Made by a program: the position numbers and the translations under genes. Of a DNA stretch of 64,000 nt, positions 19,001 through 22,000 are shown piece by piece. Numbering within the stretch: the stretch's first letter is position 1; each line of letters opens with the position of its first letter. The notes under the pieces are model-generated. The model searched no databases, was not told the origin of the DNA, and saw only the letters and a list, made by a program, of their open reading frames with translations. Location: assembly GCA_002269645.1 (NCBI GenBank), contig NIVC01000301.1:634386-698385 (forward strand), read 5' to 3'. This stretch comes from Macrostomum lignano. Its lineage: Eukaryota.

Positions 19001-22000
19001 GCAGAGGGGAGGAGGGGGAGACGAGGAGCAGCCAGTCTGACCGGTTTTGCTCGGCGCGTCGCCTGAATGTCTCAAGGGATTCGCGAGGCGAGGCGGAGAC
19101 GAGCAGACAGATTGCTTACAGTGTCCCCCATGGAGACTGCAGCAGCGCCTTATCCTGTTGGGTGTGGGATTGGTATTGAGCAATCTATGCGGTTGTTGTC
19201 AAAACTAAAGTATTTCATTTCGAATTTTGCAACGAGGGCTTTTTTATGACATGACTCGTGCGCCCTCGGCTTACCCGGCCTTTCGTGCTCATCGCTGCTT
19301 ATTGAGCCCTCTCGCCTTGTTTTGCACGCGGCTTTCAGAGCTGCGCGTCAGCAAAAAATTTTATGCCCAAAGTCTGCCTGCTCGTTTGAGCTTTTAAAGT
19401 TCCTCCTTTAAACTGACTGCTCAAAGTGGCTCAAGTTGGATGGAGAGCCGGCAAACAGAATTCTAAATATAGCTGCCTGTCTTACCTGCCACCGCGCCTC
19501 ACTCAGCTCTCAGCTCTGCTCTCAGTCTAGCAGTTCCCCTGCTCACTCAGCTCTCAGTCTAGCAGTCCCCCTGCTCACTCAGCTCTCAGTCCAACAGTTC
19601 CCCTGCTTACTCAGCTCTCAGCTCAGCTCTTAGTCTAGCAGTCCCCCTGCTCGCTCAGCTCTCAGTCTAGCAGTTCCCCTGCTCACTCAGCTCTCAGTCT
19701 AGCAGTTCCCCTGCTCACTCAGCTCTCAGCTCAGCTCTTAGTCTAGCAGTTCCCCTGCTCGCTCAGCTCTCAGTCTAGCAGTCCCCCTGCTCGCTCAGCT
19801 CTCAGTCTAGCAGTTCCCCTGCTCACTCAGCTCTCAGTCTAGCAGTTCCCCTGCTTACTCAGCTCTCAGCTCAGCTCTTAGTCTAGCAGTCCCCCTGCTC
19901 GCTCAGCTCTCAGTCTAGCAGTTCCCCTGCTCACTCAGCTCTCAGTCTAGCAGTTCCCCTGCTCACTCAGCTCTCAGCTCAGCTCTCAGTCTAGCAGTTC
20001 CCCTGCTCGCTCAGCTCTCAGTCTAGCAGTTCCCCTGCTCGCTCAGCTCTCAGTCTAGCAGTTCCCCTGCTCACTCAGCTCTCAGCTCAGCTCTCAGTCT
20101 AGCAGTCCCCCAGCTCACTCAGCTCTCAGTCTAGCAGTTCCCCTGCTCGCTCAGCTCTCAGTCTAGCAGTCCCCCGGCTCACTCAGCTCTCAGTCTAGCA
20201 GTTCCCCTGCTCACTCAGCTCTCAGCTCAGCTCTCAGTCTAGCAGTTCCCCTGCTCGCTCAGCTCTCAGTCTAGCAGTTCCCCTGCTCGCTCAGCTCTCA
20301 GTCTAGCAGTTCCCCTGCTCACTCAGCTCTCAGCTCAGCTCTCAGTCTAGCAGTCCCCCAGCTCACTCAGCTCTCAGTCTAGCAGTTCCCCTGCTCGCTC
20401 AGCTCTCAGTCTAGCAGTCCCCCAGCTCACTCAGCTCTCAGTCTAGCAGTCCCCCAGCTCACTCAGCTCTCAGTCTAGCAGTTCCCCTGCTCACTCAGCT
20501 CTCAGTCTAGCAGTTCCCCTGCTCACTCAGCTCTCAGTCTAGCAGTTCCCCTGCTCACTCAGCTCTCAGTCAAGCAGTTCCCCTGCTCACTCAGCTCTCA
20601 GTCAAGCAGTTCCCCTGCTCACTCAGCTCTCAGTCAAGCAGTTCCCCTGCTCACTCAGCTCTCAGTCTAGCAGTTCCCCTGCTTGCTCAGCTCTCAGTCT
20701 AGCAGTCCTCCTGCTCACACCGCTCTCACTCCAAACTCGCAGGCTGCTGGCATTCATTCTACCCACATTCGATCAGCCGGCCCTGAGGTCACTCAGGGTC
20801 ATGCGGCCTCTCAAACTGGTCACCGGGTTTGAGAGTAAGTAGCCATGCAGTCCCCCGGAGACTGCGCTGTCGGCCAAGCGCGCACACTGCCGCGCAGAAG
20901 CCCCGGTTGCAGGTGTCCCAGTCGGGAAGATCAGGCCTCAACACTGCTTATATATTGATAAATGTACTCCGTTTGTCTTGTGTACAATATATTAGCGCAC
21001 TGTCCTAGGCTCAGAGTCCGGCTTTGTAACTGCAGCGAACCCCGACTGGCCCGGTGAAGTTTTCAAATTTTGTTTTCACACCCAAAGCTTTTGTCCCCCA
21101 CCGCAAGGCACCCCCTAGACCAACCTCATTCAAAGCACAAATGGCATATTTATGCAATGTTCAAGTTGTCTTGTGCATAGGAGAGCCCAGTGCCGGTTGT
21201 TGCACTGTATAGCAGTAAACAACATGCCTGCATACTTAGCTTTAATCATAGTTGATTTTGTTTTTCCCCAGTCGGTCAGGCAGACCTGAAGACGCCTCCG
21301 TAGACTGCAGAAACCCAGAAACTGTGTAGCTGAAACTTGCGCAGATCTCTCAAGCTTTGCATGCCAACCAGCAGCTGCCCTCTGCATCCGAAGCAAAGCT
21401 GATGTTGTTTGCTATCGCAACGCGCTCTTTGCAGGTTCGTCACCCTGTTCGCCTCCAACCAGAGCAGCTTCGACCTGCGGACGCTGCGGGCAGTGCGGGT
21501 GCTGCGCCCGCTCAAGCTGGTGTCCGGAATCCCAAGTACAGCAGCCCAGCTCGTTCGCTTATAGTTTATTTCTCTCTCCAAGCCACAGATTGTTTTTATA
21601 AGCTTAGATTTTTAATCACAATTTTACTCTATCGGAATCGGATTACAGCTTAGACTGTTTTAATTTGCATCTGACAGCAGCATGATGTCATGAATAACTT
21701 CACTGCCTAGAACTGAATAACCAATATGTTATAAAGCCTGCAGCTATCACTAACTTGACTACCTGGGACCGAAATTTTACACTGCTTCTTCTCCTTCTGA
21801 GCTCTCTGGCAACTGTATTCAAAATTCATTAGAGACACGCGACTTTCCTTCTATAACTAATTTTTTTTCCTTATGTTACTCAGCCTGCTTGTTGTTGCCA
21901 ACGCTCCTGCGGACTTCTCTGATCCCGCCTGCCCCCCATCCCTGGAGAATCAAGGGAGCAGCCCCCCTCAGCCCCCCCTCAGCCCAAGCAAAATTGCCTG

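Follow-up and report, generated by a model that had tools for sequence, protein, structure and literature searches.

A Cav2 gene of the flatworm Macrostomum lignano with two alternative IS4 exons, one of which lacks the outermost gating charge

The free-living flatworm Macrostomum lignano has a Cav2 alpha-1 gene, for a calcium channel of the presynaptic type, in which segment S4 of domain I (IS4) is encoded twice in tandem. The gene lies in a stretch of 64,000 nucleotides (nt) of contig NIVC01000301.1 (NCBI GenBank assembly GCA_002269645.1, positions 634,386 to 698,385 of the forward strand), which is referred to below as the window and in which position 1 is the first letter. It is highly probable that two of its exons, exon a (20743..20834, + strand) and exon b (21435..21535, + strand), are mutually exclusive alternative exons, and that exon a comes from an old class of exons. 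Exon b codes for the canonical IS4, whereas exon a lacks R1, the outermost gating charge, and has a different elbow at the transition into the S4-S5 linker.

Two IS4 exons in one Cav2 gene

On the + strand of the window, pieces of open reading frame (ORF) of a compact multi-exon gene extend from ~16.1 kb to ~53 kb and appear in the order of a Cav2 alpha-1 subunit, beginning with the N-terminus and IS1, continuing with four pore motifs and the EF-hand and IQ region, and ending with ..NAYWC. The pore motifs ITMEGWT, LTGEDWN, STGEGWP, and ATGEAWQ follow each other in this order and contribute the four pore glutamates of an EEEE selectivity filter, one in each of the four domains. A search against PDB gave the best expect values (E) for Cav2.2 (8.6e-108), Cav2.1 (5.9e-105), and Cav2.3 (6.8e-99), followed by Cav1 (~1e-77) and by Nav or Cav3 (~1e-51), and among full-length proteins, spiralian channels named "type A alpha-1" match best. 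The assignment to a spiralian Cav2 gene, made in an earlier note on this DNA, is borne out by this ranking, by the names of the matches and by the pore glutamates. Full-length proteins were reached with a crude gene model of 1405 amino acids (aa), and a search with a short profile, which favors targets of the length of the query, gave 18 candidates. The provisional C-terminus, as read from the last ORF, is ..EENAYWC (53030-53050, +), in which WC is like that of the acidic-x-WC PDZ-ligand motif of Cav2 but is preceded by A-Y and not by D/E-D/E/H. A second M. lignano contig of the same assembly, NIVC01000272.1 (L005), is 97-98.6% identical to the window, introns included.

Both exons fill the same slot in voltage-sensing domain (VSD) I, which runs from the outer half of IS3 through the S3-S4 loop and all of IS4 to the elbow into the S4-S5 linker. 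Upstream of the pair lies a constitutive exon for IS2-IS3 (18515..18654, +; acceptor ..ccgtag/GAC, donor GGG/gtaagc, with splice boundaries marked by a slash), which ends with ..DFVVVVTG and is 77-83% identical to its counterpart in Littorina, Paralvinella, and three flatworm loci. The GG at its very end begins a Gly codon, for which either exon a or exon b supplies the third base with its first G. Exon a is 92 nt long (ctcgcag/G, GAGA/gtaagt) and codes for IS3b, the S3-S4 loop, IS4 and the start of S4-S5. It is followed by a GT-AG intron of 600 nt (20835..21434, +) and then by exon b with 101 nt (ctttgcag/G, CCAA/gtacag), which has the weak donor GTACAG. The downstream constitutive exon (22717..22863, +; ccctcag/GC, AACA/gtgagt) codes for the S4-S5 linker and IS5 and opens with GC CTC CAA, i.e., S-LQVVLKS. 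Between the split Gly and Ser codons, exon a encodes 30 residues and exon b 33.

Exon b, which recurs unchanged in the annotated M. lignano protein P0153, has the charge series R-R-R-R-K (R1-R4 and K5) and the elbow SGIPS. Exon a has a Pro at R1, followed by R2, R3, R4, and K5, and its elbow reads TGFES, with a Glu in place of the elbow Pro that is present in all b-type, arthropod IS4A, Cav1, Cav2, and Cav3 sequences compared. In an ungapped alignment, the Pro of exon a shares a column with the R1 residues of exon b, human Cav2.2, and human Cav2.1, and the net charge of exon a differs by -2 from that of exon b, which leaves a four-charge instead of a five-charge IS4. Direct reading of the sequence thus confirmed what the earlier note had said about the 4R+K series of exon b, the Pro at R1 of exon a and the start of S4-S5 with GFES instead of GIPS. 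It had also described the linker of exon a as 3 aa shorter, which is right relative to exon b of the same gene. However, a short S3-S4 loop could be ruled out as an unusual feature, since exon a has the length of the vertebrate Cav2 exon and aligns to human Cav2.2/Cav2.1 without any gap, whereas exon b is three codons longer.

Exon a and exon b share 58% protein identity over their last 24 residues and the same phase 2/1, and each has its own splice sites. Within the window exon a matches exon b with E = 2e-5, and it matches a-type exons of other phyla, as defined below, with E = 1e-9 to 1e-13. Therefore, the resemblance of exon a to IS4 exons is not due to chance. Since each length, 92 nt as well as 101 nt, is 2 mod 3, either exon alone preserves the reading frame, and exactly one of them is usable per in-frame mRNA. 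Inclusion of both exons adds 193 nt and shifts the frame, as the earlier note had said, and translation then meets a stop five codons inside the next exon. The frame is also lost when both are skipped. Mutual exclusivity is therefore enforced at least by the reading frame.

The a-type exon class and its relation to other exon pairs

As a-type we define an exon of 92 nt upstream of the canonical exon that has no basic residue at R1 and codes for a Pro-less elbow of the form (T/N/S)G(F/I/V)(E/Q)S. Exon a of the window has every one of these features, and they are common to the loci of Paralvinella, Littorina, and neodermatan flatworms and to annotated proteins of Pomacea, Haliotis, Patella, Antedon, and Intoshia. 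A search with the peptide of exon 3, exon a and exon 5 retrieved predicted proteins with an a-type exon from seven parasitic flatworms and from the gastropod Littorina. At the Littorina locus (L001) the same flanking exons enclose first an a-type and then a b-type exon, and the locus of the annelid Paralvinella palmiformis (L006) has the same order, with 31 residues for a and 32 for b. Moreover, a-type exons are found in annotated isoforms of Pomacea canaliculata (X8), Haliotis cracherodii (X7), Patella caerulea, and Antedon (X5), while other isoforms of the same gene have the b-type, so that a-only and b-only isoforms of one gene are annotated in all four. Aplysia, Bulinus, and the orthonectid Intoshia have the a-type exon in single gene models. 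The residue at the R1 position is Ser in H. cracherodii X7, Gly in P. caerulea, and Ala in Intoshia. The a-type exon of the crinoid Antedon, which is a deuterostome, codes for 31 residues. Searching 1.84 billion representative proteins with a profile of exon a yielded ~25 further representatives without a basic residue at R1, most of which are genomic fragments, and 16 of the 20 cluster representatives examined were a-type. The genes of a nemertean, Owenia, and Lingula exceed 100 kb and were outside the locus comparison.

Further kinds of IS4 exon were seen during these searches. Haliotis genes (P0144/P0145/P0301, P0294, P0147) have three alternative IS4 exons, namely a b-type, an a-type and a third one that keeps R1, and the nemertean Lineus (P0265) has an alternative IS4 exon that keeps R1 as well. 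In Antedon (P0513-P0526), the common IS4 exon has an Asn in place of R1, and its S3-S4 loop is very long. The fragments P0410, P0421, and P0425 represent a further IS4 class, in which the R1 position is taken by Ser or Asn, the elbow is a canonical SGVPS and the core reads R(S/T)FRV.

In six species (Macrostomum, Paralvinella, Littorina, Clonorchis, Schistosoma margrebowiei, and Dibothriocephalus), the a exon has a length of exactly 92 nt. Between them codon positions 1 and 2 are 68-92% identical, whereas position 3 is 23-48% identical and thus near random, which argues that selection acts on the peptide and that the a exon is under purifying selection, as judged from these codon patterns. At the protein level, exon a of M. 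lignano is 71-81% identical to the annelid and neodermatan copies. It is 100% identical between the window and L005, where the a-b intron differs at few sites. A selection test between these two contigs was dropped, because the introns are 98-99% identical, too, and the test therefore had no power. The earlier note had considered that exon a might be unexpressed and unconserved. This fails on conservation, as purifying selection has kept exon a across phyla, and as it is the constitutive version in one neodermatan paralogue and occurs in annotated isoforms from other animals.

Two other explanations for exon a can be weighed with these data. If exon a were a silent or decaying duplicate of exon b, i.e., a pseudo-exon that is no longer spliced in M. 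lignano, this would fit with the use of exon b in the only annotated M. lignano protein and with an acceptor that has a modest pyrimidine tract and adjoins a variable minisatellite. However, its frame is intact, its donor is a perfect GTAAGT, its length is exactly conserved, it did not change in L005 although the a-b intron did, and its peptide resembles that of the annelid and neodermatan copies despite randomized third positions. In addition, the b donors are weak wherever a and b coexist, which fits a regulated choice, and we therefore regard a pseudo-exon as very improbable. The stop that follows joint inclusion could alternatively make exon a a regulatory "poison" exon, by which inclusion of both exons leads to nonsense-mediated decay and less channel, the peptide itself being of little import. 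This is hardly credible, since exon a is conserved across phyla in its amino acids and not in its nucleotides, and since it is used alone and in frame in annotated isoforms and as the sole IS4 exon of one neodermatan paralogue.

In neighbor-joining trees of the exons, the a-type exons form one clade, with a bootstrap support of 89%, or of 66% once Antedon and others were added, in trees that rest on ~31 residues and are of low resolution. The grouping inside the clade follows taxonomy. The simplest reading of the trees is one ancient origin of the a-type exon, at least in the spiralian ancestor, and the origin would be placed before the protostome-deuterostome split if the crinoid exon is not convergent. 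Independent origins of R1-less exons in flatworms, annelids, molluscs, and echinoderms might hide behind the weak support of such short sequences. R1 was also lost in other contexts, as shown by the Asn in the common exon of Antedon and by the Ser or Asn in P0410 and P0421, and the residue at its position varies within the a-type class between P, S, G, and A. Nevertheless, such a convergence is improbable, because the a-type exons share features that are unrelated to R1, namely the length of 92 nt, the position upstream of b, an LL-/FL-type start, (D/N)Q before the R1 position and the Pro-less elbow, and because their clade groups by taxon, as vertical descent predicts.

In the sequences of parasitic flatworms that were examined, the a-type and the b-type sensors are located on separate genes, whereas in Macrostomum they are alternative exons of one gene. 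The a-type is the sole IS4 exon between the flanking exons at the three loci of Clonorchis, S. margrebowiei, and Dibothriocephalus, and it is present in eight full-length neodermatan proteins, which belong to Schistosoma rodhaini (two models), S. japonicum, S. mansoni, Trichobilharzia, Cryptocotyle, Echinococcus, and Mesocestoides. A second paralogue with the b-type was found in Cryptocotyle (P0167) and in Paragonimus, where the locus has only a b-type exon between the flanks and contains 2355 N. In the schistosome literature, the two paralogues go by the names Cav2A and Cav2B. In a tree of 1241 gap-free columns from which the IS4 exon had been removed, Macrostomum stands outside both neodermatan paralogues with 100% bootstrap. 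Together with the one exon per copy in the loci and proteins examined, this suggests that a two-exon gene was duplicated after the Macrostomum lineage had split off and that each copy retained one exon. Retention of one exon by each duplicate in turn argues strongly that both versions would make working, non-redundant channels.

Some points weigh against an old exon pair that is in use today. No transcript support for exon a was obtained in M. lignano, and the sole annotated model (P0153) has exon b. The isoforms in the other species are automated gene models, and the evidence from deuterostomes is that of one species. Furthermore, the b-only paralogue is represented by one locus, the one with 2355 N, and by one full-length protein.

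Alternative IS4 exons are known from the cacophony gene of Drosophila, in which exon 5 (IS4A) and exon 6 (IS4B) are mutually exclusive (Bell et al., 2025, PMC11828482; PMC12370356). The two fly isoforms differ in activation voltage as well as in synaptic and subcellular localization (PMC11828482), and IS4A carries one more positive charge (PMC11828482; PMC12370356). Like Drosophila cac, the gene of M. lignano is a Cav2 gene with tandem alternative IS4 exons, of which the non-canonical one lies upstream. Unlike fly IS4A, exon a has no R1, has lost the elbow Pro and gained a Glu, and therefore has one charge fewer and not one more. The IS4A exons of arthropods (beetles, wasps, moths, and a mite) keep R1 and the Pro elbow and have an added basic residue in ..(R/K)IPS, and exon a does not show this signature of a kept R1 and an extra basic residue. 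In the trees, the IS4A clade (70% or 61% bootstrap) is apart from the a clade (89% or 66%) and the two are not sisters, again with the low resolution of ~31 residues. The IS4 slot has moreover been duplicated repeatedly, as there are R1-keeping extra exons in Haliotis and Lineus. The earlier note had left it open whether exon a is homologous to or convergent with the fly pair. According to the exon phylogeny the two are different sequence classes that do not group together, while both may yet descend from one ancient duplication.

Orthology between exon a of Spiralia and IS4A of arthropods could still hold, with both going back to a single duplication in the ancestor of protostomes or of bilaterians and with R1 regained in arthropods. 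Both exons are the upstream member of their pair and occupy the same exon slot, R2 is followed by a Ser in arthropod IS4A as well as in many, although not all, a-type exons, and the crinoid a-type exon, unless convergent, dates the pair to before the protostome-deuterostome split. This relationship is possible but rather unlikely, given that arthropod IS4A with its kept R1, its Pro elbow and its added basic residue (VS[R/K]IPS) forms its own clade outside the a clade, and that the slot was duplicated more than once, as seen in the nemertean and Haliotis.

A comparable pair exists in another gene family. The exons 5A and 5N of the vertebrate Nav genes SCN1A, SCN2A, SCN3A, and SCN8A are mutually exclusive, have 92 nt and code for the end of S3, the S3-S4 linker and most of S4 in domain I (PMC8383430). 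They correspond to exon a in structural slot and length, but their copies differ by 1-3 residues and keep the charges, and their duplication was independent of that in Cav2. In Cav2 channels, S4 of domain I has been counted among the most conserved parts (PMC7939481). A choice between IS4 exons was until now reported from Drosophila, at a site that vertebrate Cav2 genes do not have (PMC11828482). A literature search that covered few subscription journals found no description of an a-type exon class in flatworms, molluscs, or annelids, or of its split between two flatworm genes. Hence, mutually exclusive Cav2 IS4 exons as such are already known from Drosophila, and what is new is the R1-less and Pro-less a-type, which has so far been visible in automated annotations.

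Splice control and further features of the window

The intron in front of exon a contains a CT-rich minisatellite (19498..20728, +) with a unit of ~32 nt in ~35 copies, which ends 14 nt before the acceptor AG of exon a. This array has a length of ~1.25 kb in the window vs ~0.5 kb in L005. It may contribute to the pyrimidine tract or the branch region of exon a, and a regulatory role is hypothetical. A second intronic minisatellite at 16722-18426 has a 24-nt unit in ~71 copies.

Since the intron between exon a and exon b is 600 nt long, steric hindrance is not the mechanism of exclusion, and both introns have GT-AG ends. No convincing pairing of docking and selector RNA was found between 20700 and 22720. 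The best pair, 20878-20890 with 22628-22640 (13 nt, 92%), would loop out exon b but was rejected, as about one such pair is expected by chance per 2 kb, and the sole sequence available for checking conservation of the pairing is 98% identical. With regard to the splice sites, the donor GTAAGT of exon a is the consensus, and the donors of the other a exons open with GTAAG except for that of Littorina, which is GTGAGT. The b donors are weak where a and b coexist, namely GTACAG in Macrostomum and GTATGT in Littorina and Paralvinella, and the b exon of Paragonimus, which is the sole IS4 exon at that locus, has GTGAGT. This distribution of donors in a small sample is suggestive of a regulated choice between coexisting exons.

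The gene has a second pair of alternative exons for IIS3-S4 (26089-26201 and 26885-26997, +). Both are 113 nt long, i.e., 2 mod 3, and code for 37 residues each, so that their exclusivity is enforced by the frame as well. The first of them has a GC donor (AG/GCAAGT), and the annelid locus L006 has two exons that match the pair (24364-24444 and 26927-27013). A candidate third pair, with 120 and 135 nt, covers the IVS1-S2 loop and IVS2 (41375-41494 and ~42303-42437, +). Both lengths are divisible by 3, and exclusivity is thus not enforced by the frame here, and the acceptor of the second exon is uncertain.

Further downstream, a single long exon from 43207 to ~44230 (+) encodes IVS4, IVS5-S6 and the EF-hand region and continues past ..LNKLVPPDD. 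An intron contains a tandem duplication of ~1.5 kb (45134-47903), in which the same ORF strings recur at 45134/46644, 45696/47205, and 46284/47793. On the - strand, a 9-nt tandem repeat at 32689-32994 reads as (DLR)n, to which S4 queries aligned weakly and spuriously.

Predicted gating of the a isoform and what it would mean

The choice between exon a and exon b alters only the sensor of domain I, where it changes the charge count, the loop and the elbow. In Cav1.2, the movement of IS4 is rate-limiting for channel opening, and the charges of IS4 set the slope of activation and shape inactivation (PMC6096772). For Cav2, the nearest counterpart of exon a is the CACNA1A mutation R192Q from type 1 familial hemiplegic migraine (FHM1), which removes the same charge, R1 of Cav2 IS4, according to the ungapped Cav2.1 alignment and the literature (PMC9864995). 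In human embryonic kidney (HEK) cells, R192Q in human Cav2.1 leads to activation and inactivation at more negative voltages (PMC9864995), and a reduced G-protein inhibition is attributed to Melliti et al. (2003), as cited in PMC9864995. However, R192Q is a single pathogenic exchange of Arg for Gln in the canonical exon, whereas exon a is a conserved natural variant with a Pro and ~12 further differences.

A likeness in charge pattern also exists to the T-type Cav3 channels and to Nav channels. Their domain-I S4 has no basic residue at the position of R1 in Cav1 and Cav2 and shows a four-charge pattern x-A-[LI]-R, as in the P-A-L-R of exon a. The likeness is one of charge pattern only, since exon a is clearly a Cav2 exon and most Cav3 and Nav channels keep the elbow Pro that exon a does not have.

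From these comparisons, the a isoform would carry less gating charge in VSD I and have an altered coupling. By analogy with R192Q, both its activation and its inactivation would be moved somewhat toward negative voltages, the step of sensor I would be shallower or faster, and its voltage-dependent inhibition by G-beta-gamma would be weaker. The organism would thereby have two modes of Cav2 gating from one gene. The loss of the elbow Pro and the added Glu may change the coupling to the pore independently of R1. When a small residue replaces R1, a leak through the gating pore is possible, as with neutralizations of R1 or R2 in other channels. An AlphaFold2 model of sensor I of the a isoform was unusable (mean predicted local distance difference test score, pLDDT, of 49, from an alignment of 7 rows), and no structural claim is made.

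Several observations speak against such a gating effect of exon a. The voltage dependence of R192Q channels was unaltered in oocytes and altered in only a subset of neurons (PMC9864995). Many other differences between a and b, loop and elbow included, could cancel or reverse the effect of R1, and a four-charge IS4 is in itself not abnormal, as human Cav3.2, Cav3.1, Nav1.5, and Nav1.7 have a Ser at the same position of domain I. Because the effect of R192Q varies with the cell, the direction and size of any shift caused by exon a are uncertain, and a shift toward more negative voltages is a tentative proposal that we hold with somewhat less than even confidence.

Beyond M. lignano, one may speculate, and it is doubtful rather than probable, that the a/b pair was inherited from the bilaterian ancestor, and that the single Cav2 gene has made two channels ever since, one with a five-charge, high-threshold and G-protein-sensitive sensor I and one with a four-charge sensor I that has a Pro-free elbow and opens at lower voltages or escapes inhibition by G-beta-gamma. 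The a exon would have been lost in vertebrates, remodeled in arthropods and fixed as a separate gene in parasitic flatworms. If this is true, one of the two Cav2 channels of parasitic flatworms naturally lacks the charge that is removed by R192Q in human migraine.

A conserved isoform that drops R1 and has a rebuilt S4-S5 elbow would mean that splicing regularly targets sensor I in many phyla of animals. The a isoform would also be a natural experiment, as it removes the same charge as the FHM1 mutation, and the parasitic flatworms would offer a clean example of alternative exons that were resolved into separate genes after duplication. Finally, schistosomes, flukes, and tapeworms have one Cav2 channel whose predicted sensor I is unlike that of humans, which could matter for selective pharmacology.

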